Assembly (NCBI RefSeq): GCF_001194135.2
Contig: NC_068996.1
Location: 25,211,122-25,275,121 of the forward strand
Reading direction: 5' to 3'
Source of the DNA: Octopus bimaculoides
Lineage: Eukaryota
Length of the DNA stretch: 64,000 nucleotides
Shown here: one piece after another, positions 5,887 through 48,750 of the stretch
Layout of the letters: every line of letters begins with the position of its first letter
Position numbering within the stretch: position 1 is the first letter of the stretch
The notes under the pieces: model-generated
What the model was told of the DNA's origin: nothing
What the model saw: the letters and a program-made list of their open reading frames with translations, nothing else
The model's database searches: none
Translations under genes and position numbers: made by a program

Positions 5887-5988
5887 TCAAATGGCATCAA
5901 TATCAATATCTGCTCCACTCTCATCATCATCATCATCCACATTCTTTGGTTCAGACATAGAAACTACCTCAGTAGCAGAATAGGCAAT
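5887..5988 (-). CDS. EIF5: EIF5 terminal coding exon (IAYSATEVV...DIDIDAI*)
   Basis: Polypyrimidine tract plus CCAG acceptor; conserved DIDIDAI C-terminus; TGA at 5889-5887. Confidence 0.96.
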   Translation of the reverse strand: MAYSATEVVSMSEPKNVDDDDDESGADIDIDAI

Positions 5989-8838
5989 CTGGAAGAGAGA
6001 GAAAGAGAAAAAGTGTTAGTAATTGTAACAAATTGTTAATGTCAAGCAAGTCACTATCTTTACAACTTTAATTATTCAGGACTACATGAAATAAATTTTA
6101 TAGAAGAGACTGAAAATTATGTGAGTTTTTTTCTCTTAATAAAAAAAAAACTCATTTCAAACTAGACACCATCTCCCAAATTAGCAATTTGACATTGGAC
6201 TACAGCACAGGATATTTTACATTTCTATGTTCTTAATTGAAGTATTAGCACCAATTATGGACATGGGAAGGAAGAGCGGGAAAAGCAGAATATACCTCTT
6301 CATCATCAGACCCATCTTTATCAGAGTCTTCAACTTCAGCTTCTTCCAACCACTTGATAAATGGCTTTGCTTTCTCCCTGATGTCCTCAGCCACCGACTT
6401 GGACACATGATTCTTAGTTGGCTGAAAAGTTAGAAATAACAAATCAGTGAAGTTATACATTTACAACAAATACAAATAGTGCATGTGAAAGACAAAGAGA
6501 AGGGAAACACACCTTAGCAGCCCATTTTAGTATCACATCTTCATCCAGTATATCTTCATCATACAGTGTCTTTAATATATGTGGAACCTTTGACATAAGA
6601 ACATCCTTGTGGATTTTACCAACAAGAATTTCAATACCAGACAACAGATATTTTTGGGCTTTTGGACTATCATTGCAAAACTGAAAAAAAAAAAAAAGTT
6701 CACAAATCTTAGTTTTAATTTGGAAAAGTAGACTTTAGTGAAGTGTAACTTTAAAATGGTTTCATGCTTATTTGTCAAAAACACCAACAGGTTTAAATTA
6801 AAATTGTTTTAAAAACAATGCTGATATGCATGGTATCAAAGGGGTTTAAAAATAAGCATTTAAATATTAAATCAATAGTGGAACTATATTTACCCTTAAG
6901 AGGAGTTTCTTGTGTTCCTTAATTTGTTTTAAAATGTCTGCATTAAAAAGCAATTCAACCAGGATTGTAGGACATTTCTCTTTGATCTCAAGACGTTCAG
7001 CTTCAGCAAGGATATCTTTGTCAGCACCAGCAAGGGTTTTAGATTCATGCTTTTGCTATTCCAATATAAATAAATGTATTAACTCTAAAATATCAAACCT
7101 TCAGTTCAAAAATGCAAATACTATTGTTTAAAACATGTCAAAAACATTTTACTATATCAGCACAAGCGTATTGGATATTCTCGTTGAAAATACATTCAAA
7201 AGTATTAAAGCAATAACTAACCAATGGGAGTATCAATATACTTAAAACCTAAACTTGTATTCATTTTATTTTAAAATGCAAGAGAAAACCTAAGTTACAT
7301 GAACATATTACTCAGGAAAAATTTTGACTCAACTCACTTTGATAAAGTTGTAGAGAATGTTCATTCTTTCTTCTTGGGTCTTTTCAAGATCATCTGTTAA
7401 GGTAAGCCCTTTAGCTGCCGATGTCAAATCTCTCATACGTTCCCTGACAGCTGCTTCACTAAAATCTTCAGTCCAATCATCATCATCACCAGCATCTTGG
7501 GCCTCAGGAGGTGCCAGAATATCTCCTCCACTTGCACGCTGAGCAGCCATTTGTTCTTGTGCATTAGCTTCAGGACTGTTACAATCACCATTCACACTCT
7601 CTTGTTTCTTTGACTTCTTTGACTTTTTGCTTTTAGATGTTGCTTGAGCTTGATTATCCTAGAAAATGAAGTTATTAACTTTCAGTTTTAACTGTTTTTG
7701 AATACCAAGTTAATATATTCACAAGATATGATACTTTAATGTGCAGTTCATAGTGTTCTATGAGGCAATATACAGACATTAAATTCTTCAGAAAATATCA
7801 TTGACAATCTTTTGAAATTTAAAACTAGCTTTTCTTATTATGCCTAAAAATCAAATGCTCTCTATCTTTTAAAAAAAAAAGAGGAAAAGAGTAACCATTC
7901 ATTACCTGATCAGGTGGGTTTTTCAAGATAAATGTAGTAAGCTTATGATTCATATCAACGGGACCTTGGTATCCACATGCAATACAACGTTGCAAGATAA
8001 GCTGCTTTCTGGATAAAATAACCTGAAAGTTCATAAAAAAAACAAAACTTTAAAATACATGCACCTTCAATCAAGCTAAGTTATAGAAGTTGAACATTCA
8101 GAATAGTTGCTTACCAAATTGGTCTCTGGATTAGAGCATTGTGGACAAAGCACAAATTTCTTAATGAATCCATCAAGTAATCCCTGCAGCTTAATAGCTT
8201 CATGTGCACCATTAACAATGTAGCGATCATTTTTCAAGTCAAATTGTGTTTGGGCGCCAAGTTCACAGCCAAAATACTTGGTAGGATCTTAAAAATAAAT
8301 AGGTTACAATAAGAAAGTTTGCAGTTTGAACACTCATCGAGTGTGAATTACGCTTGACAGCTTATATTCCTATTCAGAACTTCAAATATGAAATCTATAT
8401 CAGAGGGGGTGGGGGAAAGAAAAGGGGGAAAAAAAAGCTTACATTTTGGGGGCCTTGAGAGAGCTTTGGCAATCTCTGGCATGTTGACAACAACTGTTTT
8501 AATACCATTTCCTTTCCCTTCTACCTAGAAATGGAAAAAAGAAAACTCATTTTACAGAATCGAAGTTTTATAATATAAAATTTACAAATATGGACAACTT
8601 CCGGCGAAGAAAGTGAAACGTAAAGTGCTAATAATCAGCAGAAATGGGGAGTAAAACGCAAAATGTGTTTTACTTAGTTATATTTTAAATTGAAGTTAAA
8701 TTTCAGGAGTTAAAAATGCGTCTTATAAGCCAAATATATTGAAGTACGAGAATGATAACATACTTTTGCTATGAGACGAGGCATCTTATAGCGATAAAAC
8801 TGGTCAGACACATTGGTGTTGACGTTAACGCAAGCCAT
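5887..8838 (-). CDS. EIF5: Eukaryotic translation initiation factor 5, spliced CDS join(8764-8838, 8443-8524, 8115-8287, 7906-8022, 7338-7658, 6894-7055, 6513-6680, 6296-6421, 5887-5988), 441 aa
   Basis: Manual splicing gives [40 protein letters not shown]... with the zinc ribbon (CPQC...CIAC), a K-rich linker, an acidic DDDDW segment, W2 domain AA-boxes and C-terminal DIDIDAI*. All 8 introns are GT-AG and the phases are consistent. Confidence 0.98.
6296..6421 (-). CDS. EIF5: EIF5 coding exon 8 ([29 protein letters not shown]...DDEE)
   Basis: W2 domain AA-box 2 ([10 protein letters not shown]); TTTTCAG / GTATAT. Confidence 0.96.
6513..6680 (-). CDS. EIF5: EIF5 coding exon 7 ([13 protein letters not shown]...[26 protein letters not shown])
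   Basis: W2 domain AA-box 1; TTTTCAG / GTGTGT. Confidence 0.97.
6894..7055 (-). CDS. EIF5: EIF5 coding exon 6 (QKHESK...[16 protein letters not shown]...KKLLLR)
   Basis: Start of the W2 domain; AATAG / GTAAAT. Confidence 0.96.
7338..7658 (-). CDS. EIF5: EIF5 coding exon 5 (K-rich linker, [28 protein letters not shown])
   Basis: 107 codons open; TTCTAG / GTGAGT. Confidence 0.96.
7906..8022 (-). CDS. EIF5: EIF5 coding exon 4 ([39 protein letters not shown])
   Basis: Second CxxC of the zinc ribbon plus HKL-x-FILKNPP; TTTCAG / GTAATG. Confidence 0.97.
8115..8287 (-). CDS. EIF5: EIF5 coding exon 3 ([17 protein letters not shown]...[11 protein letters not shown])
   Basis: Conserved eIF5/eIF2beta motif; TTTAAG acceptor, GTAAGC donor. 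Confidence 0.97.
8443..8524 (-). CDS. EIF5: EIF5 coding exon 2 ([27 protein letters not shown])
   Basis: TTCTAG acceptor and GTAAGC donor; conserved G-domain-like N-terminal motif. Confidence 0.97.
8764..8838 (-). CDS. EIF5: EIF5 coding exon 1 ([25 protein letters not shown])
   Basis: ATG at 8838 in strong context (GGAATGG: G at -3, G at +4); donor GTATGT at 8763. Confidence 0.97.
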
Positions 8839-11563
8839 TCCGATTGATTTTTGTGACACTTATGTTTACGATGGATGCTACTATCAGGATAGCGCCAATG
8901 GCTCCAAACCGTGGAGAAATTCATAAAACCTTGATCGGATTTACTTCTGGTCGAACACTTAGTTCTCGTGCTCAATAGGCACAATGATAACTCTGGAAAA
9001 AAGAAGAAAAGAAAATGACAAAAAACAAAAACCACTGGCTACATAAAACAATATTAAGTCTATATGTAAATTCGTGGCTAGATACTCACAAATTATTATA
9101 CTAGCAGTATTTCTATGTTGATAAAAGACTTATTCATAGTGTATAGAAGAAATGAAATTGTTGGGGGTTTTTTATTTTTTTTTTTGCGAAGTAATATTTT
9201 CAAGTTGCCAAGAGACCACTAACAAATTTCGAAATTTCTATTTAATCCACCAGGGTTGTTGACCGAACCATCAGAAATCAAGCATAATCCAACATTATCT
9301 TCAAGAAAAAGATCATTGTGCCTTTAACAAATCCTCAATATATTGCTGCTAATCGTCAATATGGTTGAATATTGGAAAGGTAGTTTTGATACAAAGTCTT
9401 TTTCGGCAAAAGAGGAGAAAGAGAAAAAAAGAAGAGGTTGTATCGGTCATGGCTTTCCTAAGGGCAATAGCAATTCATCTAAAAAGAAATCATTTTTAAG
9501 GTCCATGTTAATGAAACTTATAATCATCAATAGTTGACACATTAAAGTTGTTGGAGTTAATAACAGCATTGAAACTTAACAAGTAGCGAAACTTCTTCGA
9601 AAACAAAAAACAAAAAAAAACTGATGGAAACTAGAGAGAGGCGTTCATTGTTGAATAATTTTGGAAGGCGTTCTGTGGAACGATGATGCCAATATTTTGA
9701 AATTTAGCAAACAAAAAAAAAAAGAGAAAAAAAAACAAACAAAAAAAAAACGGATTCAAATGGTTAAAACATTTTTTTAAATAAGTTCAAAGAGTTCGAG
9801 ACGACAGTCTGTAGGTGGTGACGACATTAAAAGCTCTGCTATATTACATATTAGCAGAGACGAGGCAACGTGGAAGTTAAAAAGAACTGGAAGAAAAAAA
9901 AGTCCGTTTCCCTACCACCTCAAAAATTAATAAATATGAAACTAAACTTTCTCTTCAGTTAAATCCATTTAGCATAAATAAATCAATTAAAACGATATTT
10001 TAAAAGCTTATTAAATTGAAAATATGTTTTCTTTTTATCTCGTTCCTTTACGNNNNNNNNNNNNNNNNNNNNNNNNNNNNNNNNNNNNNNNNNNNNNNNN
10101 NNNNNNNNNNNNNNNNNNNNNNNNNNNNNNNNNNNNNNNNNNNNNNNNNNNNNNNNNNNNNNNNNNNNNNNNNNNNNNNNNNNNNNNNNNNNNNNNNNNN
10201 NNNNNNNNNNNNNNNNNNNNNNNNNNNNNNNNNNNNNNNNNNNNNNNNNNNNNNNNNNNNNNNNNNNNNNNNNNNNNNNNNNNNNNNNNNNNNNNNNNNN
10301 NNNNNNNNNNNNNNNNNNNNNNNNNNNNNNNNNNNNNNNNNNNNNNNNNNNNNNNNNNNNNNNNNNNNNNNNNNNNNNNNNNNNNNNNNNNNNNNNNNNN
10401 NNNNNNNNNNNNNNNNNNNNNNNNNNNNNNNNNNNNNNNNNNNNNNNNNNNNNNNNNNNNNNNNNNNNNNNNNNNNNNNNNNNNNNNNNNNNNNNNNNNN
10501 NNNNNNNNNNNNNNNNNNNNNNNNNNNNNNNNNNNNNNNNNNNNNNNNNNNNNNNNNNNNNNNNNNNGATTTAAAAAGAAAAAAAATTTTTTTCGGAATA
10601 CTATAATTAGAAAAAAAAATTAAATGGGGGAAAAAAACTCCAGCGAACCCAGATTAAAAGAGAAAAGACAAGAGAGGTAGGTCAAAGAAGTCGGATTTTT
10701 CTAAAAATTTCCGTCAATATCATTGGCAGCAAGTGGCAGTAAAAGAATGAAAGGGAACGAAATTAAAATTCCTTAAAACGCACAAATCACACAGAGAAAA
10801 GCAAGACTAACGAAAACAGAACAAGGCAATTTTTTTTTCTTCTCTCCCAAGGCCACGAAACATTTCATAAAAGAAAGTAGCCATGTATATAATAAAACCA
10901 ATGTGAAACATGGAATGGATTCCATGCTGAACGTGGAAAATTTTCCTAGTGTTGCTGACAATATTCAATGATAAAACTAGGTTTTAAATACATATATATT
11001 GCTTTTATATATAACATTTTATACACTTATTACATCTAGAACAGACATGTAACATAATTTGCTTACATAGAAACATAGCACTTTAACACTTGTAATAGGT
11101 TTAAGTACTACATCGCTTCTCCCACACGCATAATATACATTCTCTCACTACACACACACACATGTACTCTAACACATACTATTTAAACGATTAAGCCTAG
11201 AACATACGTACATATAAAGATGTACATGAAACAGTGATGAAAGGAACATGCGGTTCATGTCACGACAGGAAAGACGAGCACATATAACAGAAGGGTAGAG
11301 CAAAAAAAGGTTAATTATAAAAGGGATTATGAGAAAGTGTGATAGATATAGAGAGAGAGGATAGAGAAATCTAGAATAAAGGATATATATATATATATAT
11401 ATAGGAAACTATCTGTTTATATTATATAAGCTTACATCCACGGAGTGGTAGATATACGTATATAGGAATACTGTGATAGACAAGTTAAAAGTTATGTAGT
11501 TATAATAAGAAAACTGTGGGCCGAAAAAAATGTGAATGAAAAAAAAATGGACAAACAGAAATA

Positions 11564-11599
<36 letters not shown>

Positions 11600-11720
11600 G
11601 GACAAAAAGATAAGACAGAGAGGGAGAGGTTCGGAAGGAAGAGGCGAGCTCTAAATGGTTGTGGTTATTTTAGGTTTGTCCAAGAGGAAAAAAAAACTTA
11701 CCGTCTTGATGCAATGACAT
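8769..11720 (-). promoter_or_regulatory. Spliced inhibitory uORF join(11702-11720, 8769-8992), 80 codons, overlapping the EIF5 start out of frame
   Basis: TTTTT-ATG-T at 11720 and GTTTT-ATG-A at 8924 are in frame after splicing; the ORF stays open to TAG at 8771-8769 inside the EIF5 CDS. Confidence 0.75.
8839..8992 (-). other. EIF5: EIF5 5' UTR part of the first coding exon
   Basis: Strong acceptor TTTTCTTTTCTTCTTTTTTCCAG ending at 8993; contains one uAUG at 8924. Confidence 0.85.
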
Positions 11721-11860
11721 AAAAACGTCGACGACAACAGAAAGGATAAAGAGATAAAATAAAATATGGCGGTTGGCAACAGCTGAAGAAGGGAGCGACA
11801 CGAGCTCCTATTACTTCGTCCTGGTAGCCGTCTTCTTCTTCTTCTGGCTGCTGCTGCTGC
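11702..11860 (-). other. EIF5: Probable EIF5 non-coding first exon (5' boundary unknown)
   Basis: Consensus donor GACG|GTAAGTT at 11702/11701; CpG-richer context; no sense-strand ATG between 11721 and about 12668. Confidence 0.7.
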
Positions 11861-12230
11861 TGCTTGCTACTACGTCGTCGTCGCCGCCACCACCACTCCT
11901 CCTAAAACAAACACTACTTTAGTAGGAGTGTTTTTAGTAGTGTAATCGTCTCTTTCGGTACACTTGGTTGTTGAGTGGTGGAAAGTAGTAAAGGTGGTGG
12001 CAGTGTCGATATTGCTGGTGCTTGCTTTTATAGGCTTTTTTATAACTGCTGCTGCTGTTGTTGTCACTAGTGAAAACACTAGTGCTGCTGCTGCTAGTAC
12101 CGACACTAGTGCGGCACCTGATATTGCTGCTGCTGCTGCTAGCACTGACAATGGTCGTCGCTGCTCCTACTGCTGCTGATGTCGTTTTGATAAGGAAATA
12201 CTAAATACTACTACTACTAATAATAATAAT
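11820..12230. promoter_or_regulatory. CpG-richer, (GCT)n/(GTC)n/(TAA)n-rich region upstream of the EIF5 first exon (probable promoter/TSS region)
   Basis: Locally raised GC and CpG content with trinucleotide runs, directly 5' of the donor-defined exon; free of recognisable TEs. Confidence 0.45.
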
Positions 12231-13718
12231 AATAATAATAGTAAAAGTGGTGATTTCAAAAAAAAAATAAACTTGTTCACCGCTTTCCTACCAGTAATAT
12301 ACGTGACCAAATTAACTGGTTTTCTTCCTGCTGTTGTTCTTTTGTGTCGAGGTTAAAAGTAAAATGAATGTTGATAATGATGGTAATACCGCTACTGCTG
12401 ACGGCAACTATTATTCTGTGCAGACTGATGATCTTCAAAAATCACTGGTGAAAACAATACAAAACTATTATTAATGTTGTACTTTTTTTTAATGATATAT
12501 ATTAAACGATCGTAATAAACGTATTCTGTATAGTAGTTATATATATTGAAGTGCTATCCAATAACCAAGAATTCGCTTGGTGATAAGAATACTAGGGTGT
12601 TTATTGTTTCTCTCTTGTGTTGGCGGTGAATGATCTGCTAGTTCCCACAATCCGTGGTTAGAGACAGACATAAAAGGGGTGGGAGGACGAAAGTATGTGA
12701 GTGAGTACGTGTACTTTTCAGAGAGGGAAAAAGAGCTATTGAGCGACAGAGGAGGAGGAGAGAGAGGAAAACTACAAGTATGTATATGAGAGAGGCATAC
12801 ACATGGAACAATCGAGGGAAAAGACGACGGAGTGTATGAATGAATGAGAAGGGATGGGAGAGGGTGTGTTGAAAAGAAAAGGCGGGTGTTTAAGTAAATT
12901 ATCCTAAATTAACATTTTAAAAAGTAATTAGTGAGTTCGAGTATCAGTACTCCTCATGAGGTTAATTAATAATTTATGATATTCCTTCAGATAAATAAAA
13001 AATCGATTCTACGGAATTAGCTCAAAATATGCATAATCGACATATATATATATGTATATGAGAGAGAGATTGCTATCTACAAATAAGACAGATGCGAGCA
13101 GATCAAGTCGGTAAGAGAGAGGTGAACCCGTAAAATATTTCCTTTACGATACTTAATATTTTGTTGAGAAACAAATATTCTTCTATTCAGAATCAGAAAT
13201 CAAACTTATCGCTTATCATTTAATACGAATAAAATAAAATTAATGAATTCTGAAATTACTCACATCGTCGAGCAAATAACCTTGATCGGGAAAAAAAAGG
13301 TTGGTTACAAAATGAAAGATGGAGAGTTAAGTTAGAGGGAAGAAAGATCGGAATAAGTAGAGGGAACCGGAATTAGTCGTCGAAACAAGCGGAAGTCTCG
13401 TTCGAATGAGACTTATGGCATTTTTTTAAATGTAATATAACAACTTTGTTATGTTCATACGTTTTATTATGTTCACAGATGTACATATACGTGTTATATA
13501 CAAACACACACATATATATATGAATAATAATAATAAATGGAGCAAAACGCATATAAATAGAAGTTCCTTTAATTCCTACACATGTTTCAAACGGCTGTGA
13601 TATCTTGTTTTCTAGTGTAATTTTGCTACCTCTGGTAACTATTAACATATTTACATTATCAAAGGTTTTTTTAAAAACCGAGATAATATTAATATATACA
13701 TTAAACTAATATATATAT

Positions 13719-13749
<31 letters not shown>

Positions 13750-13750
13750 G

Positions 13751-13786
<36 letters not shown>

Positions 13787-13869
13787 CTCGACCCTACACC
13801 CAGTTTTTCGAAACCGGTTTCCAAGACTCGTGTCGAATAGCAGCATATGTGTGTGTGATTACTTATTAT

Positions 13870-13985
13870 TAACCCTGGTAGTGCTGTTGCCTGCCAGAAA
13901 GTGCTTTCTTGAGTTGAAATACCGCCGTGTTCAATGTTGGATCTTCTATCCTTCCGGGATCGAGAAAAAGTATCAGTTGACTTGA
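13870..13985 (+). mobile_element. Degenerate SINE family A copy
   Basis: GAGTTGAAATACCGCCG and TCTATCCTTCCGGGATCGAGAAAAAGTATCAG resemble the B-box and core at 110-180. Confidence 0.55.
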
Positions 13986-14000
13986 ATTCGAAAGCTTGTG

Positions 14001-14043
<43 letters not shown>

Positions 14044-14595
14044 AGAGAGAGAGAGAGAGAGAGAGAGCAACATAGATAATGCATGTGTTTATTAGAAGCC
14101 ACTTGTAGGGAAAGCAAATCCCTTTAATTTTCATAGCGCAAGCCGTGATGATAATAAATCACTTCCGAGATTATTGCACTGGGATACAGAAAATCCAATT
14201 ACGAATTGGCAATATAACTTTATTAAACTTTAATACATTTGTTTATATACATATACTTGTATACGAATAATTTAGGCAGAATTTTCTCGTGGCAAACAGT
14301 GGAACAGTAAAGAGTCATCATAAAATGGATGAGAAAACAAACTCCTGGCCAGACGGCAAGTTATGATCGCAGATCCTGGCGTTATCTATCCCATGTAGAC
14401 AGCTGAACTGACGCATATAGTTTTTTTATGTCCACATACGTGTGTGTGTGTATATGTATACATATATNNNNNNNNNNNNNNNNNNNNNNNNNNNNNNNNN
14501 NNNNNNNNNNNNNNNNNNNNNNNNNNNNNNNNNNNNNNNNNNNNNNNNNNNNNNNNNNNNNNNNNNNNNNNNNNNNNNNNNNNNNNNNNNNNNNN

Positions 14596-14629
<34 letters not shown>

Positions 14630-15394
14630 CATATGTCTATATATATATATATGTATATATGTGTATGTGTGCATGTATATAAACATATACACGCATGTAA
14701 GTAGATAACACCATACTAAATATACATGTGTAAATATGCACACCCCCTTTGAGTGTGTATCTATCTATCGATATATATATGAATGCATATATGCCTATAT
14801 GTATTTATGCACATGCGTGTACATCTCTATACACACACACAGATGCATACAACACTCGCGCGTGTAACTGCGTTTATACCGTCTGCCGACTTGCTTATAA
14901 TCGATATTATAAGAATTACATATCAATTTATTCATAAAAGTAAACAGCGAAATTTCATTTCATCCCACAAGCCTCGCGACTAGGTTGTTGTGACCTGAGA
15001 ACAAGATATTTCGCAGGTCTCTGTTAACTGTGACTGTGAATGCCAAGTGGGAGTATTGTGGGTTTGTGAAGATTATGCCTACGTGATGTAGATTAGGAAC
15101 AAACGTGGTGTATCAGCTGTACGTAAATGGAAATATCAAATGCGTATGACACACTGTCCCATCGGAAATAAAGAAAAATACAATTGAAACGGAATCTTTA
15201 TGTAATTATATCAAAAATATCGATGTGTAAGTGTCAATACATTCTAATATCAAGAACATCCTGACGGGACTGGGTGCCTATAGGTTTTACTGGAAGATTC
15301 GAAAATTCTCATGGCGAACACCGGCTAGATTTAACATTGCTTATATATATATATATATATATATATAGACATATGTGTGTGTGTTTATTTCCTT

Positions 15395-18056: not shown

Positions 18057-18960
18057 CATCATCATCATCATCGTTTAACGTCCGCCTTCCATGCTAGCAT
18101 GGGTTGGACGATTTGACTGAGGACTGGTGAAACCGGATGGCAACACCAGGCTCCAATCTAATTTGGCAGAGTTTCTACAGCTGGATGCCCTTCCTAACGC
18201 CAACCACTCAGAGAGTGTAGTGGGTGCTTTTACGTGTCACCCGCACGAAAACGGCCACGCTCGAAATGGTGTCTTTTATGTGCCACCCGCACAAGAGCCA
18301 GTCCAGGGGCACTGGCAACGATCTCGCTCGAAAAACCTCATGTGTCACCCACACAAGAGCCAGCCCAGGGGCACCGGCAATGATCCCGCTCGGAAGATTT
18401 CATGTGTCGCCCGCACATGAGCCAATCCAGGGGCACTGGCAACGAANNNNNNNNNNNNNNNNNNNNNNNNNNNNNNNNNNNNNNNNNNNNNNNNNNNNNN
18501 NNNNNNNNNNNNNNNNNNNNNNNNNNNNNNNNNNNNNNNNNNNNNNNNNNNNNNNNNNNNNNNNNNNNNNNNNNNNNNNNNNNNNNNNNNNNNNNNNNNN
18601 NNNNNNNNNNNNNNNNNNNNNNNNNNNNNNNNNNNNNNNNNNNNNNNNNNNNNNNNNNNNNNNNNNNNNNNNNNNNNNNNNNNNNNNNNNNNNNNNNNNN
18701 NNNNNNNNNNNNNNNNNNNNNNNNNNNNNCAGAACCCCACACAAGAGCCAGTTCAGGGGCACCGGCAACGATCTCGCTCGAAGAAATTTCATGTGTCACC
18801 AGCACAAGAGCCAGTCCAGGGGCACTGGCAACGATCTCGCTCGAAAAACCTCATGTGTCACCCACACAAGAGCCAGCCCAGGGGCACCGGCAATGATCCC
18901 GCTCGGAAGATTTCATGTGTCGCCCGCACATGAGCCAATCCAGGGGCACTGGCAACGAAA
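18057..18960 (-). mobile_element. Family C element (RTE 3' tail) with an internal 62-bp VNTR, gap inside
   Basis: (CAT)n tail at 18057-18071; units start at 18290, 18352, 18414, 18740, 18803, 18865 and 18927. Confidence 0.85.
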
Positions 18961-31329: not shown

Positions 31330-34300
31330 CACCTCTCCCACAATCACCACCACTACCTGTCATCCACCTATTGCTCACCTATACTCCCTTACACTTTATC
31401 CATCCTTTCTCTACTTCATTCATCTCCCCAACAATGTATGCTCATCTTTGACCCTCTGTTTCAGTTACCCTTCATGAGAAATATGTAGAAGAGACTACAA
31501 CAGATCATTCAGCTTTCCATCTTCACTCCAAAACTTCTGTCCCTTCCATCATACTCCTGTTCCTTTCACCCAATATTTTCATTTCACCTTTTCAGTACTG
31601 CCAGCCATTAGTCTCTCTCCTCTAGCATACTTCTACTGCCATCCATCATCTCTTGCTATTACCCATCTCTTACTTCCTATCTTCTTTCCAATACTTCTGT
31701 CTTCTATAATATTCCTGTTCCTTTCAGCCCCTTATTTTTCTATTACCTTTTCTGTGCTGCCAGCCATAAACATCTCTATGCTAGCCTACTTCTATTGTCG
31801 TCCATCATGTCTTGCTATTGACCATCACTTACTTCCTAGCTTAATTCCAATACTTCTGAGTCTTGTATAATACTCCAATTCCTTTCACCCACTTATTTTC
31901 CCTTCATACTTTTAGTACTACTAACCATTGCTCTCTTTACTCTAACAAAACTTTACTCTCATCCATCATCTCAAGATATTGGTTGTCACATCACTCCAAT
32001 ACCTCCATCTCTTCCATCATACTCCTGTTCCTTTCACCCACTTATTTTCCTTTCACCCCTTCAGTACTACCAGCCATTACTCTTTCTACTCTGGCCTACT
32101 TCTACTGTCATCCAACATCTCTTGCTATAGAACATCACTTCCTATCTTCATTCCAATACTTCTGTCACTTGAAAAAATTTTTGTTCCTTTCACCTGCTTA
32201 CTTTCCTTTCACCATCTCAGTACTGCCAGCCGTTGCTGTCTCTGTGACTATCATATATCATCTCTAGCTATTGCCCATCACTTTCTTCCTATCTTCCCTC
32301 CAATCCTTCTATTTCTTGTTGCTCTTGTTGCTTTCACCCACCCTTGTGGCTTTCACCCTTTCAGTACTGCCAGCCACTAATCTCTGCTCTGTCATACTTC
32401 TACTGTCATCTATCAACTCTTGCTACTGCCCACCACATACCTCCTATCTTCACTCCATTACTTCTGTCTCTTCTATCATACTCTTGTTCCTTGCACCTTT
32501 TCAGTACTATACTCTATTCTAGTCTAACTTCTATTGTCAGCCAGCATCTCTTGCTATTGCCCATCACTTTGCAACCTGTCTTTGCACAAATACTCCTGTC
32601 TCTTCCAACATAATCTCTTTTCTTTCACCCACTTATTTTCCTTTCTCAGTACTGCCAGCCATAAATCTCTCTCCTCTAACCTACTGCTGTCATCCATCAT
32701 CTTTTGCTATTGCCCATCATTTACTTCTACCTTTGTTCAAATACTTCTGTCTCTTCCATGATACTATTGTTCCTTTCACCCACTTATTTTCCTTTCATCC
32801 AATTATTTTCCTTTCACCCTTTCAGTACTTTGTGCCATTACTCTTTCTACTCCAGTCTATTTTTACTGTCATAAAACACATCTTGCTATTACCCATCTCT
32901 TACTTCCTATCTTCATTCCAATACTTCTGTCTTTTCTATTATACACTCGTTCCTTTCACCCACTTTTATCCCCTTTCAGCCTTTCAGTTCTGCCAATCAT
33001 TACTCTCTCTGCTCTCCTCCACTTTAACTGTCATCCATCATCTCTTGCTATTGCCCATCACTTATGCCCAATCTTCACTCCCATACTTCTATCTCTTTCA
33101 CCATACTCTTCATCCTTTCATCCACTTATTTTCCTTTCACTCTTTCAGTAATTCCATGCTCATCATTTACTTCTACTTTCACTCAAATACTTCTGTCTCT
33201 TCCATGATATTATTGTTCCTCTCATCCACTTATTTTCCTTTCACCCAAATATTTTCCTTTCACCCTTTCAGTGCTGCCAACCAACACTCTCTCTCCCCCC
33301 TGTCTACATCTATTGTCATCCATCATCTCTTGCTACTGCCCATCACTTACTCCCCTTCTTCACTCCAATACTTCTGTCTCTTCCATCACACTCCTGTTCC
33401 TTTCATCCACTTATTTTGCTTTCACCCTTTCAGTACTTTGTGCCATTACTCTTTCTATAGTATTACAAGCCGTAAATCTCTCTAATCCTTTCACCCATTT
33501 ATTTTCCTTTCACCTTTTCAATACTGCCAGCTATAAGTCTCTCTACCCTAGTCAGATTCTATTGTCATCCATCATCACTTGATATTGTACAGCATTTACA
33601 TACTATCTTCACTCTATTACCTCTGTGTCTTCCATCATAGTCTTTTTACATTCAACCAGTTATTTTCATTTCACATTTTCAGAACTGCCAACCATAAATC
33701 TGTCTCCTCTTGTCTACTTCTATTGTCATCCATCATCTCTTGCTATTGCCCATCAGTTACTTCTATCTTTACTCAAAAACTTCTGTCTCTTCCATGATAC
33801 TGCTGTTCTTTTCACCCACTTATTTTCCTTTCACCCACTTATTTTCCTTTCACCCTTTTAACTACCAACCAACACTCTACTCCCACCAACCATTACTCTC
33901 TCTCCTCTTGCCTATTTCCAATACATTTGCCCATCAGTTGTTTCCTATCTTCACTCAAATACTTCTCTCTCATCCATTATATGCCTGTTACTTTCACCCA
34001 CTTATTTTCCCTTCATCCTTTCCAAACCACCAACCATTACTCTCTCTACTTCAGTCTACTTCTACTGTCATCCAACATCTCTTTGCTATTGCCCATCATT
34101 TACTTCCTACCTTCATACTCTTGTTTCTTCCACCCACTTATATACCTTTCACCTTTGAATACTGCCAGCCATAAATCTCTCCTCATCAGTCTACTACTCT
34201 CATTTTAATACTTCTATCTCTTCCACCATACTCTTATTCCTTTCACCAACATAATTTCCTTTCCACCCGTTCAGTGCAGCCAGCTAGCCAGCCAGCCATA

Positions 34301-37300
34301 AATCTCTCCACTCTAGCTTATTTCTATTGTCATTCATCATTTACTTCCAATCTTCACTCAATTACTTTTGTCTCTTCTATCATACTCTTGTTCCTTTCAC
34401 TTTTTCAGTTTTGTACTCTACTGTAGCTGACATCTATTGTCATCCATCATCTCTTACTATTGACCATCACTTACTTCCTATCTTCACTCCATTACTTTCA
34501 TCTCTTCTATCATACTCTTGTTCCTTTCCAGTTCTGTACTCTACTCTAGCCTACTTTTATTGCCATGCACCATCCTTTGCTATTGTACATCATTTCCTTC
34601 CTATCTTAATTCCAATACTTTTATCCTTCCATCATACTCCTGTTCCTTTCACCCACTTATTTTCCTTTCACCTTTTCACTACTGCCAGCCATTACTTTCT
34701 CTCCTCTTGCATACTTCTACTGCCATCCATCATCTCTTGCTATTGCCCATCACTTACATCATGTCTTCACTCAAATACTTATGTCTCTTCCATCATATTC
34801 TTGTTCCTTTCACCCACTTATTTTTCTTTTGACCCTCTCAGGACTACCAACCATTAACCTCCACACTCCAGTCTACTTCTATTGTCATCCATCGTCTGCT
34901 TTGCCCATCAATTTTTTCCCATCTTCTCTCAATTACTTCTGTCTCGTCCATCACTCTCCTCTTTCTCTCACCCACTTATTTTCCCTTTGAACCTTTTAGT
35001 ACTACCAACCATTACTTTCTTCACTCCAGTCTACTTCTACTTTCATCAATCTTCTCTTGTTATTACCCATCACTTTCTTCCTATCTTCACTCCGATATTT
35101 CTATCCCTTCCATCATACCCTTCTACCTTTCACCCACTTTTTTCCTTTAGCCCTTTCATTTCTACCAACCATTACTCTCTCTACTCCAGTCTACTTCTGC
35201 TGTCATCCCTCATCACTTGCTATTTCCCATGATTTACTTCCCAATACTTCTATCACTCATTTACACTCCAATACTTCTATCACTTCCATCATTCTCCTAT
35301 TCATTTTACCCACTTTTTTTCCTTTCACCCTTTCAGTACTACCAAACATCATTCTCCCCACTCCAGTCTACTTCTTTTGTCATCCAGCATCTATTCCAAT
35401 TGCCCATCGATCACTTCCCATCTTCACTCAAATATCTCTGTCTCATCCATCACACTCCTGTTCCTCTCACTCACTTATTTTCTTTTGAACCTTTCAGTAC
35501 TACCAACCATTACTCTCTCTCTACTCCAGTTGACTTCTACTGTCATCAAACATCTCTTTGTATTGCCCATCACTTTCTTCTTTCTTCACTCTGATACTTC
35601 TATCTCTTCCATCACACTTTTGTTCCTTTCACCAACTTATTTTCCTTTCATCCTTTCAATACTGTCTGCCATAAATCGACACACTCCTGTCATCCATCAA
35701 AACTTGCTATGGCCAATTATCTACTACCTGTCTTCACTTCCTGTCTCTTCTATCATACTTCTGTTCCATTTCACCCACTTCTTTTCCTTTAGCCCTTTCA
35801 GTATTACCAACCATTACTCTCTCTACTCTAGTCTACGTCTACTGTCATCCACCATCTCTTGCTATTGCCCATCATTTACTTCCTATCTTCACTCCACTAC
35901 CTCTGTCTCTTCTATCATACTCTTGCTCCTTTACGTTTTCAGTTCCATACTCTTCTCTAGCCTATTCCAATTGTCATGCATCATCTCTTGCTATTGACCA
36001 TCATTCACTTCCTACCTTCACTCCATTACTTTCATCTCTTCTATTATACTCAGTTTTGTACTCTAATCTAGCCTACTTCTATTGTCATCCATCATCTCTT
36101 ACTATTGTACATCATTTCCTTCCTATCTTCACTTCAATATTTCTATCTCTTCCATCATACTCCTGTTCCTTTCACCCACTTATTTTCCTTTCAATCTTTC
36201 AGTACGACTAACCATTACTCTCTCTCTACTCCAGTCAAACGTTTCTTTCTATACTGTACTCACTCCAATACTTCTACCTCTTCCATCATACTCTTGTTCC
36301 TTTCATCAACTTATTTTTTCATTCAGCTCTTCCCTACTGCCAGCCATAAATCTGCATTCTAGCCTACTTCTCCCGTCATCCATCAACACTTGCTACTGCC
36401 CACCACTTATTTCCTGTCTTCATTCCATTATTTCTGTCTCTTATATCATAACACTGATCCTTTCACCAACTTACTTTCCTTTCAACCTTTTAGTACTAGG
36501 AACCATTACTCTCTCTACTCCATTCTACTTCAACTATCATCCATCATGTCTTGCTATTGCCCATTGCTTGCATCCTGTCTTCACTCGAATACTTCTGTCT
36601 CTTCCAGCATAGTCTTTTTCCTTTCACCATTTTCCATTCACCTTTTCAGTACTCGCAAACATCAATCTCTTTACTCTAGTCTATCTCTTACATCATTTAC
36701 TTCCTATCTTAACTCCAATATTTCTATCTCTTCCATCGTACTGCTATTCCTTTCACCCAATTATTTTCCTTTCAACCTTTCAGTACTACCAACCATTACT
36801 CTTTCTACATGAGTCAGCTTTTACCGTCCTCAAACACCTCTTTCTATTTCCATGACTTTCTTCCTATACTCATTCCAACACTTCTACCTCTTCCATCATA
36901 CTCTCTTTTCATTCACTAACTTATTTTCCTTTCAGCCCTTTCTCACTGCCAGCCATAAATCTGCATTCTAACCTACTTCTATAGTTATCCATCAACACTT
37001 GCTACTGCTCACCGCTTATTTCCTGTCTTCACTCCACTATTCCTGTCTTCAGTCTACTTCACCCGTCATCCATCATCTCTTGCTATTGCCCATCATTTAC
37101 TCTTCTCCGTTACTTTTGTCTCTTCTATCATACTCTTCTATTGTTATCCATCATATCTTGCTTTTGACCATACTTACATACTATCTACACTCAAATAATT
37201 CCGTCTTTTCCAACATAGTCTTTTTCCTTTCACATTTTCAATACTGCCAGCCATAAATCTCTCTACTCCTACTGTCATCCATCAACTCTTGCTATGGCCC

Positions 37301-38200
37301 ATCATTTATTTCCTATCTTCACTCTAATACATCTCTGTCTTCCATCATCTCTTTGTTATTGCCCATCATTTACTTCCTACCTTCACTCTCTTCCAACATA
37401 GTTTTTACATTTCACCCACTTATTTTCCCTTCACAATTTCATTACTACCAACTATTACTCTTTCTACTCCAGTTTACTTCTATTGTCATCCATCTCTTGC
37501 TATTGCCCATCACTTACATCCTGTCTTCACTCAAATACTTCTGTGTCTTCTATCATACTCCTGTTCCTTTCACCCACATATTTCATTTCCACCTTTTCAC
37601 TATTGCTAGCCATAAATCTCTCTACTCTAGCTTACTTCTACTGTTATCCATCTTGACTGGCTATTGGCTATCATTTACTTCCCATCTTCTCTCCAATACA
37701 TCATTTTCTTCCATCATGCTCTAGATCCTTTCACCCTTATTTTCCTTTCAGCCTTTCAGTTCTCTCTACTCTTGTCTACTTCTATTGTCATCCATCATCT
37801 CTTGCTATTGCCCATCACTTACTTCCCATCTTAACTCCAATACTTCTGTCTCTTCCATCATACTAATCTTGCTTTCACCCGCTTATTTTCCTTTCAGCCT
37901 TTCAGTACTTCCAGCCATTAATCTCTCTACCCTAGCCTACTTCTGCAGTCATACACCATATCTTGTTACTCCTCATGTTTTTCTTCTCATCTTCACATTG
38001 ATACTTGTGTCTCTTCCATCATACTCTTGTTCCTGTCGCCCACTTTTTTCATTTCACTCTTTCAGTACTACCAATCATTACTGTCTCTAATCTAGCCTCC
38101 TTCTACTGTTGTCCATTATCTTTTGCTGTTGCCCATCACTTTCTTTCTATCTTTACTCCAATACTTCTGTCTCTTCTATCATAGTCTTATTCCTTTAAAT
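31330..38200. repeat. Degenerate pyrimidine-rich satellite, unit about 150-160 bp
   Basis: Recurring CCATCATCTCTTGCTATTGCCCATC / CTGTTCCTTTCACCCACTTATTTTCC / CAGTACTGCCAGCCAT motifs (e.g. 31643, 31802, 31963, 32112). Confidence 0.92.
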
Positions 38201-47105: not shown

Positions 47106-48004
47106 GCTGCCAAATAACTGAGACATGTATAAGTAAAAGAGATATGTACATACATATAAGCTGTGTATGTGGCAGTCCTTTCAGTTTACAGTGAGAACAT
47201 CAATATCTGAAATAGCTAGCTTGGACATGTCATAAGCACTATAAGTTCAAAAGTGTAAATGCTAGTAAAGTTTTTTTTTAATGTCGGCCTAATTTAAAAT
47301 TTCAAAATGCTGTGTGTGTGTATGTGTAAGTACATAAGGACATATATAATATACATACATATATATATATACATANNNNNNNNNNNNNNNNNNNNNNNNN
47401 NNNNNNNNNNNNNNNNNNNNNNNNNNNNNNNNNNNNNNNNNNNNNNNNNNNNNNNNNNNNNNNNNNNNNNNNNNNNNNNNNNNNNNNNNNNNNNNNNNNN
47501 NNNNNNNNNNNNNNNNNNNNNNNNNNNNNNNNNNNNNNNNNNNNNNNNNNNNNNNNNNNNNNNNNNNNNNNNNNNNNNNNNNNNNNNNNNNNNNNNNNNN
47601 NNNNNNNNNNNNNNNNNNNNNNNNNNNNNNNNNNNNNNNNNNNNNNNNNNNNNNNNNNNNNNNNNNNNNNNNNNNNNNNNNNNNNNNNNNNNNNNNNNNN
47701 NNNNNNNNNNNNNNNNNNNNNNNNNNNNNNNNNNNNNNNNNNNNNNNNNNNNNNNNNNNNNNNNNNNNNNNNNNNNNNNNNNNNNNNNNNNNNNNNNNNN
47801 NNNNNNNNNNNNNNNNNNNNNNNNNNNNNNNNNNNNNNNNNNNNNNNNNNNNNNNNNNNNNNNNNNNNNNNNNNNNNNNNNNNNNNNNNNNNNNNNNNNN
47901 NNNNNNNNNNNNNNNNNNNNNNNNNNNNNNNNNNNNNNNNNNNNNNNNNNNNNNNNNNNNNNNNNNNNNNNNNNNNNNNNNNNNNNNNNNNNNNNNNNNN
48001 NNNN

Positions 48005-48750
48005 NAACGGCCACGCTCAAAATGGTGTATTTTACGCGCCACCTGCACATGAGCCAGTCCAGCGGCACTGGCAACGATCTCGCTTGAATGTCTTTACACA
48101 TGCCAGGAAGGCGACGCTGGGCACAGGTGCCATCACGATTTCGCTTTCACTTGCCCCAACAGGTCTTTGCAAGCTGAGTTTCATGTCCAATGGAGATGAC
48201 GTTGGCATGGGTGCCAGTCATCGAATTTAGTTCGATTTCGATTTCACTTGCCTCAACAGGTCTTCGCAAGCGGAATTTAGTGTCCAATGAAGAAAGGTAT
48301 GCATAAGTGAGCTGGCTACACCCCTGGCGGAGGCCTTGGATTTAGGTCTCACTTGAGAATGATTAATTGCTGAATTCATACAATCAGTAGCATTCGTTTC
48401 AGCCAGCCTCATAATTAAAATATCATATATAAAATATAGTAATATATATATAAAATATAGTAATCATCATCATCATCGTTTAACGTCCACTTTCAATGCT
48501 GGCATGGGTTGGACGGTTTGACGGGAGACTGGTGAGCCAGATGGCTGTACCGGGCTCCAATCTGAACTGGCAGAGTTTCTACAGCTGGATGCTCTTCCTA
48601 ATGCCAATCACTCCGAGAGTGTAGTGGGTGTTTTTACATGCCACTGGCATGAAGGCCAGTCACACGGTACTGGCAATGGCCATGCTCAAAATGGTGTTTT
48701 TACGTGTCACCTGCACAAGAGTCAGTCCAGCAGCACTGGCAACGCCCTTG
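48005..48750 (-). mobile_element. Family C (RTE-tail) copies
   Basis: ACGGCCACGCTCAAAATGGTG at 48007 and CATCATCGTTTAACGTCC at about 48470, homologous to 18057-18300. Confidence 0.75.

Follow-up and report, generated by a model that had tools for sequence, protein, structure and literature searches.

The 5' leader of the eIF5 gene in a 64,000-nucleotide (nt) stretch of Octopus bimaculoides contig NC_068996.1 (the window, in whose coordinates all positions are given) is very probably, judged by comparison with related leaders, the octopus copy of the conserved eIF5 autoregulatory leader. In mammals, eIF5 is autoregulated by upstream AUG codons (uAUGs) in poor context that head an inhibitory upstream open reading frame (uORF) (Loughran, Sachs, Atkins & Ivanov 2012, NAR 40:2898, PMC3326321). 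That study describes the first of these codons, uAUG1, as carrying U at -3 (98.8% of cases) and never a purine, as never having G at +4, and as favouring U at -1 and -2. The longest uORF begins at uAUG1, spans at least 50 codons in invertebrates, precluding reinitiation, and in vertebrates overlaps the main open reading frame (ORF) out of frame. The same properties are found in the octopus leader: uAUG1 has U at -3, -2 and -1 and lacks G at +4, the spliced leader holds more than one uAUG ahead of a strong main AUG, and a uORF of 80 codons overlaps the eIF5 coding sequence (CDS) out of frame and ends 70 nt inside it. Furthermore, the arrangement is conserved in cephalopods, a gastropod, a bivalve and primates. 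An earlier note on this DNA had proposed that the eIF5 stringency circuit is retained in octopus, and the agreement with all published sequence features, together with the conserved architecture, supports this proposal.

Architecture of the spliced leader

The elements of the leader and of the gene that it precedes are as follows.
11718..11720, minus strand: uAUG1, in the poor context GUUUUUAUGU
11702..11720, minus strand: start of the uORF (19 nt), with which exon 1 ends, encoding MSLHQD plus the first base of codon 7
8993..11701, minus strand: leader intron (GTAAGT...TTTTCCAG), a phase-1 intron within uORF codon 7 that holds an N gap
8839..8992, minus strand: leader part of exon 2, bearing the body of the uORF
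8922..8924, minus strand: uAUG2, in the poor context GGUUUUAUGA; splicing brings it into the frame of uAUG1
8839..8921, minus strand: uORF segment between uAUG2 and the main AUG, with apparent peptide-level constraint
8836..8838, minus strand: eIF5 main AUG, in the strong context AUCGGAAUGG
8769..8771, minus strand: uORF stop codon TAG, which ends 70 nt downstream of the A of the main AUG
5887..8838, minus strand: eIF5 coding region, main ATG to stop codon, in nine coding exons according to tblastn exon blocks

Both uAUGs, their contexts, the frame and the stop codon were found on the minus strand at every position where the earlier note had placed them. The wider context of uAUG1 is GTTTTTATGT, with U at -3, -2, -1 and +4, and that of uAUG2 is GGTTTTATGA; both are poor contexts as claimed, with U at -3 and no G at +4. 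The main AUG stands in the wider context ATCGGAATGG, with G at both -3 and +4. Splicing of 11702 to 8992 does place uAUG1 and uAUG2 in one frame of 80 codons, with the peptide MSLHQDELSLCLL...FIAIRCLVS*, or of 51 codons if translation begins at uAUG2. This frame is offset by 2 nt from the eIF5 main frame; it crosses the eIF5 AUG out of frame and stops where predicted within the CDS, the TAG ending 5 nt short of 8764, the last position of coding exon 1. The codons at 11720 and 8924 are indeed the sole ATGs of the spliced leader between 12671 and 8838. A comparison of the uORF peptide with a collection of 5.8 billion proteins found no candidate, and the uORF is therefore not represented in that collection as a protein.

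Spliced RNA from a congeneric octopus (contig L010, 98% protein identity) and from two groups of distant cephalopods (contigs L001-L005, L014, L007-L009; 78-79% protein identity) has exactly the predicted junction from 11702 to 8992. Contig L010 joins ...CATCAAGACG straight to AGTTATCATTG..., and its 233 nt that follow the junction, up to the last base of coding exon 1, match the window at 100% identity; the contigs of the distant cephalopods show the same exon 1/exon 2 junction. The exon ends are also the same in the genomes of O. sinensis and Argonauta, with GT...AG introns of 2,649 and 7,620 nt, respectively, and an annotated O. vulgaris isoform likewise opens with MSLHQDELSLCLL. In the window, exon 1 ends at 11702 at the donor G|GTAAGT, 19 nt from uAUG1, and the acceptor is formed by a long polypyrimidine tract with a CAG ending at 8993, exon 2 running from 8992.

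The middle of the leader intron is occupied by an assembly gap (10053-10567, 515 N), about 1.1 kb from either splice site. Since this gap is wholly intronic, it does not affect the frame of the mature mRNA. It persists in the public chromosome assembly GCA_001194135.2, and the orthologous O. sinensis intron is ungapped and colinear with both gap flanks, the 515 N corresponding to about 379 nt there. The orthologous transcripts contain no sequence between the two exons, and therefore an exon hidden in the gap is unlikely. The window holds 12 such N runs (for example 14468-14595, 18447-18729 and 47376-48005), four of which lie within a chromosome-level stretch (L011) and are unchanged there.

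The main ORF downstream of the uORF is eIF5. On the minus strand, the gene extends from the main ATG at 8838 to a stop codon that ends at 5887, a range with which the public record L011 agrees, and the translation product of its exons is identical to the O. bimaculoides protein XP_014781537 (P0124) and matches the Pfam families PF01873 and PF02020 (eIF-5_eIF-2B and W2 domains). In the chromosome record CM046616.1 of GCA_001194135.2, the eIF5 locus is 100% identical to the window, N runs included.

Conservation of the uORF and alternative readings of it

The earlier note had asked for an alignment of orthologous cephalopod leaders, and in this alignment the uAUG contexts, the frame and the stop position are all kept. 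The core UUUUAUGU, covering uAUG1 from -4 to +4, is identical in seven of seven cephalopod sequences, and across the cephalopods examined both uAUG contexts are unchanged, the main AUG is flanked by a purine at -3 and G at +4, and +70 is the constant stop position of the uORF. O. sinensis and L010 share the O. bimaculoides uORF without any change, that of Argonauta has one residue exchanged, and that of the distant cephalopods counts 81 codons; the indel that separates octopods from other cephalopods is 3 nt long and keeps the frame. Between octopus and distant cephalopods, the leader from uAUG1 to the main AUG has a nucleotide identity of 90-91%, compared to 73-79% for the whole eIF5 CDS, 84-86% for its first 450 nt, which is its most conserved part, and 64-68% for the 170 nt upstream of uAUG1.

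The two-uAUG overlapping uORF is common to oyster, Aplysia, contig L015 and primates, with the following positions relative to the main AUG.
Oyster (L016): uAUG1 at -194, GTTTTTATGA; uORF of 87 codons ending at +70; uAUG2 at -98
Contig L015 (64% protein identity): uAUG1 at -194, GCTTTTATGA; uORF of 86 codons ending at +67; uAUG2 at -89
Aplysia (L030): uAUG1 at -191, ATTTTTATGA; uORF of 85 codons ending at +67; uAUG2 at -92
Primate (L028): uAUG1 at -230, GGGTTTATGT; uORF of 97 codons ending at +64; uAUG2 at -122, TTTTTCATGT

In the non-cephalopod animals examined, the uORF stop thus lies between +64 and +70. The octopus resembles Aplysia, oyster and L015 in the positions of uAUG1 and uAUG2, in the overlap (+67 to +70) and in a peptide motif, (G/A)FM(N/K)...S(I/L)HRK(H/R)K, that is found in all four. 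Octopods differ from the other molluscs by the loss of one codon before the intron, and the uORF starts with MSL(L)HQD in cephalopods as opposed to MT(V/L)L in the other molluscs compared. When transcripts are mapped to genomes, the leader intron has the same position and phase in primates, Aplysia and cephalopods: it follows the A of uAUG1 by 22 nt (19 nt in octopods, which lost the codon), and all three have ..(A/G)AC G|AG.. at the junction, even though intron length ranges from 1,034 nt in the primate and 5,792 nt in Aplysia to 2.6-7.6 kb in octopods. The shared intron position means that the splitting of the uORF is ancestral and not peculiar to octopus, and it argues that the intron-split uORF module as a whole was inherited from the bilaterian ancestor and not reinvented.

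The substitution pattern within cephalopods differs along the uORF. Between uAUG2 and the main AUG, the variable columns fall on uORF codon positions 1, 2 and 3 in the numbers 0, 1 and 9 (p = 3.6e-4). In its uORF frame this segment evolves like coding sequence with a constrained peptide, a pattern that points indirectly to translation of the frame. In the overlap with the CDS, the variable columns number 1, 5 and 1 by uORF position, corresponding to 1, 1 and 5 in the main frame, a pattern imposed by the eIF5 frame. Constraint on the first 29 codons of the uORF appears to be limited to the start with its context, the frame and the length.

This pattern raises the possibility that the uORF acts mainly via its encoded peptide, the conserved segment stalling the ribosome in the exit tunnel. 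As a speculation on the geometry, the basic stretch SIHRKHK would lie 6-12 residues behind the P site while a ribosome standing on the eIF5 AUG blocks scanning. The third-position location of nine of the ten variable columns between uAUG2 and the main AUG agrees with such a role, as do the counts per sequence pair (six synonymous versus zero to one non-synonymous codon differences), and the motif S(I/L)HRK(H/R)K is common to cephalopods, the gastropod, the bivalve and L015. Moreover, the uORF of plant eIF5 and that of human EIF5 are classed as conserved-peptide uORFs (CPuORFs; Takahashi et al. 2020, 10.1101/672840), and octopus likewise conserves the peptide between uAUG2 and the main AUG beyond the nucleotide constraint. 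However, regulatory CPuORFs are defined by sequence-dependent repression, which human EIF5 did not show; in the frameshift assay in human cells, its CPuORF was not among the eight sequence-dependent repressors (10.1101/672840). In addition, Loughran et al. observed little peptide conservation between distant branches (PMC3326321). The primate peptide lacks the HRKHK motif; its MSL start and the tail that the overlap dictates are all that it shares with octopus. As for the invariant F-M pair, the UUU/UUC AUG context read as codons accounts for it. Action chiefly through the peptide is rather improbable, but it could operate together with stringency sensing, and a peptide-dependent component in molluscs is possible given the substitution pattern.

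It is very unlikely that the leader is conserved as an RNA structure or protein-binding site in which the open frame is incidental. Such a reading could draw on the leader identity of 90-91%, which exceeds that of the CDS, and on the conserved block upstream of uAUG1 (described below), which lies outside the uORF. An RNA structure was rejected, as the leader folds no better than its shuffled versions (folding energy z = +0.74, equalled or bettered by 159 of 200 shuffles) and matches no Rfam family. That the sites which vary between uAUG2 and the main AUG are almost all third codon positions of the uORF, and that the 3-nt indel retains the frame, likewise speaks against a non-coding element, and leaders of other animals that are unalignable as nucleotide sequences still keep the contexts, frame, length and stop position. 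Finally, that the uAUGs start an alternative eIF5 isoform, in which a 110-nt intron (8909..8800) fuses uORF residues 1-34 to Phe15 onward, is scarcely credible: the O. vulgaris model CAI9734585.1 (P0123, 462 aa) does start with the MSLHQDELSLCLL peptide and continue into eIF5, and GT and AG are present at the required window sites (ACG|GTTTGG ... GACCAG|TTTT), but the splice is seen in none of 15 cephalopod transcript contigs, its donor GTTTGG is weak, the fusion would displace conserved N-terminal residues of eIF5, and such an isoform would give no account of why other phyla conserve the overlap and the position of the stop. The fusion in CAI9734585.1 may be a gene-prediction artefact that favours a longer ORF, or a rare isoform.

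Sequence upstream of uAUG1

Two further features lie upstream of uAUG1.
11721..12670, minus strand: AUG-free sequence, part of a long first exon and leader or of the promoter
11761..11797, minus strand: conserved exon-1 block CGCTCCCTTCTTCAGCTGTTGCCAACCGCCATATTTT, with a pyrimidine tract and a CCGCCAT motif

The sense stretch of about 950 nt without ATG above 11720, to which the earlier note had drawn attention, is real (12670-11721) and is the longest ATG-free run on its strand, the next one being 459 nt. Dinucleotide shuffles of the stretch are expected to hold 8.5 ATGs, and 0 of 1000 shuffles were ATG-free, although these numbers are flattering as the boundaries of the stretch were set after the fact. 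The triplet CAT, which is ATG read on the other strand, occurs 11 times in it and the other permutations of A, T and G between 5 and 26 times. Microsatellites were considered as a cause and rejected, as no more than about 90 of the 950 nt are microsatellite sequence. Every cephalopod examined has such an ATG-free run above uAUG1: it measures 890 nt in O. sinensis, 1,039 nt in Argonauta, 755 nt in L010 and 538 nt in L007. The run recurs where the cephalopod sequences have diverged or are unalignable; in Argonauta only about 110 nt align. The L010 transcript contig spans most of the stretch, the window segment 12437-11702 aligning to it in two blocks. These observations suggest a far-upstream start for a substantial part of the transcripts, and selection that keeps uAUG1 the first AUG; if true, an AUG-free stretch of 0.5-1 kb would imply that long-leader transcripts are common.

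The block at 11761-11797 is the sole well-conserved block upstream of uAUG1 in the cephalopod alignment, with a partial counterpart in Aplysia, CGCTCCCTT...CCGCCATC. We take its tract to be a terminal oligopyrimidine (TOP)-like pyrimidine tract and CCGCCAT to be a YY1-like motif. The block may adjoin the main transcription start, and all Aplysia contigs begin 93-124 nt before uAUG1. Together, the start-proximal appearance of the block and the Aplysia contig starts weigh against a far-upstream start.

The 5'-most 290 nt of L010 map 2.1-2.4 kb upstream of the remainder of exon 1 in both octopus genomes; positions 43-290 of the contig correspond to window 15134-14891 on the minus strand and to L012 4030-4293, and contain ATGs. 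At the boundaries of the segment skipped by L010 (window 14890..12438), clear GT..AG signals were looked for and not seen. The segment of 290 nt could be a further 5' exon, reflect a deletion in that species or result from a chimeric contig.

Some neighbouring sequences were noted in passing. The ATG at 12671 (minus strand), just above the ATG-free stretch, also has a poor context (CCTTTTATGT) and heads a 44-codon ORF, the first 39 residues of which are kept in O. sinensis (MSVSNHGLWELADHSPPTQERNNKHPSILITKRILGYW...). G-poor tandem arrays occupy 31527-38194 on the plus strand, their repeat unit being about 160 bp long (reported periods 111-177), and they explain both a GC skew near -0.7 and a 951-nt ATG-free run of the plus strand at 31807.

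Proposed circuit and its relation to known systems

The conserved leader suggests the following course of events. A scanning 43S complex would meet two AUGs in the worst context, with UUU before and no G after, and would mostly scan past them, the bypassing complexes then initiating at the strong eIF5 AUG. A high level of eIF5 relative to eIF1 would lower the stringency and raise initiation at uAUG1 or uAUG2. Ribosomes translating the frame of 80 or 51 codons would cross the eIF5 AUG out of frame and end 70 nt inside the CDS; as they end there out of frame, they could not make eIF5, and eIF5 synthesis would fall. The dependence on the levels of eIF5 and eIF1 is inferred from the mammalian system (PMC3326321). 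Furthermore, eight exon junctions lie downstream of the uORF stop, and translation of the uORF may therefore expose the mRNA to nonsense-mediated decay.

A more elaborate role of the leader geometry can also be envisaged. In primates, Aplysia and cephalopods, uAUG1 lies 19-22 nt upstream of the exon junction, and an exon-junction complex deposited at this spacing could allow splicing to mask or mark uAUG1 on new mRNA, or could couple the use of uAUG1 to nonsense-mediated decay. That the geometry as a whole is functional, with uAUG1 linked to the exon-junction complex, SIHRKHK stalling on the eIF5 AUG and the AUG-free stretch keeping uAUG1 first, is improbable.

Several points weigh against reading the octopus leader as an autoregulatory switch. 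The response to eIF5 dosage was demonstrated only in human cells (PMC3326321), so function has been shown for the human leader only, whereas the octopus leader is known here by sequence comparison. The evidence for the splice junction comes from transcripts of relatives, not of O. bimaculoides itself. In the uORF between uAUG1 and uAUG2, the variable columns show no bias among codon positions 1, 2 and 3 (6, 3 and 6), and therefore translation from uAUG1 is backed only by the conservation of its context, frame and position. Given the ATGs in the 5' part of L010, some isoforms may have more uAUGs than two. Finally, uAUG1 is missing from the 5' end of one contig, L006. Positions 1-30 of this contig start with GTCGTTTCCTTGTCCT|AGTTGTC, without uAUG1 and without the last 15 nt of exon 1; this deviant short end is probably a contig-end error, but it may be an alternative 5' end.

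The human and other mammalian EIF5 leaders have the same uAUG1 context, with U at -3, -2 and -1 and no G at +4, and a second in-frame uAUG in poor context. In the primate L028, the uORF of 97 codons, compared to 80 in octopus, lies in the same relative frame over the main ORF, and both uORFs stop within the KMPRLIA codons (+64 and +70, respectively). Both leaders have a phase-1 intron at ..AC G|AG.., 22 and 19 nt after the A of uAUG1, and both peptides start with MSL but are otherwise unlike, save for the part dictated by the overlap. The primate leader differs by an additional short uORF, its third, which is in frame with the main ORF (uAUG at -90, 22 codons) and absent from octopus, and the primate main AUG (GCCAAAATGT) has A at -3 and U at +4, whereas octopus has G at both. 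A related loop is the autoregulation of eIF1 (cited in PMC3326321), in which a poor-context AUG is again the sensor of stringency. However, in eIF1 the sensor is the main start, the use of which is lowered by high eIF1, while in eIF5 the sensors are upstream AUGs, the use of which is raised by high eIF5.

PMC3326321 lists Mollusca among the bearers of eIF5 uAUGs and uORFs, and the octopus leader agrees with the phylum-level pattern that it states for its Mollusca and invertebrate set. Its methods mention a 1056-nt intron within human uORF1, and no statement on the conservation of the position of this intron was found in the main text of the paper. The retention of the leader in molluscs and the presence of an intron within uORF1 are thus already known (PMC3326321) and not new. 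O. bimaculoides itself is probably not in the molluscan set. The octopus genome was published after the work of Loughran et al. in 2012.

The additions to the known circuit are the intron position shared from primates to molluscs, the coding-type segment downstream of uAUG2 and the AUG-free stretch of 0.5-1 kb. These comparative additions are modest and leave the accepted model unchanged. The sequence comparison also corrects or extends the annotation of octopus eIF5, for which it defines the 5' exon, the leader intron and the uORF. The peptide between uAUG2 and the main AUG appears to be under purifying selection in molluscs, within a leader that is more conserved than the CDS. Taken together, the sequence hardware of the eIF5/eIF1 stringency feedback is intact in a cephalopod, which makes the octopus leader a clean invertebrate example of this circuit.

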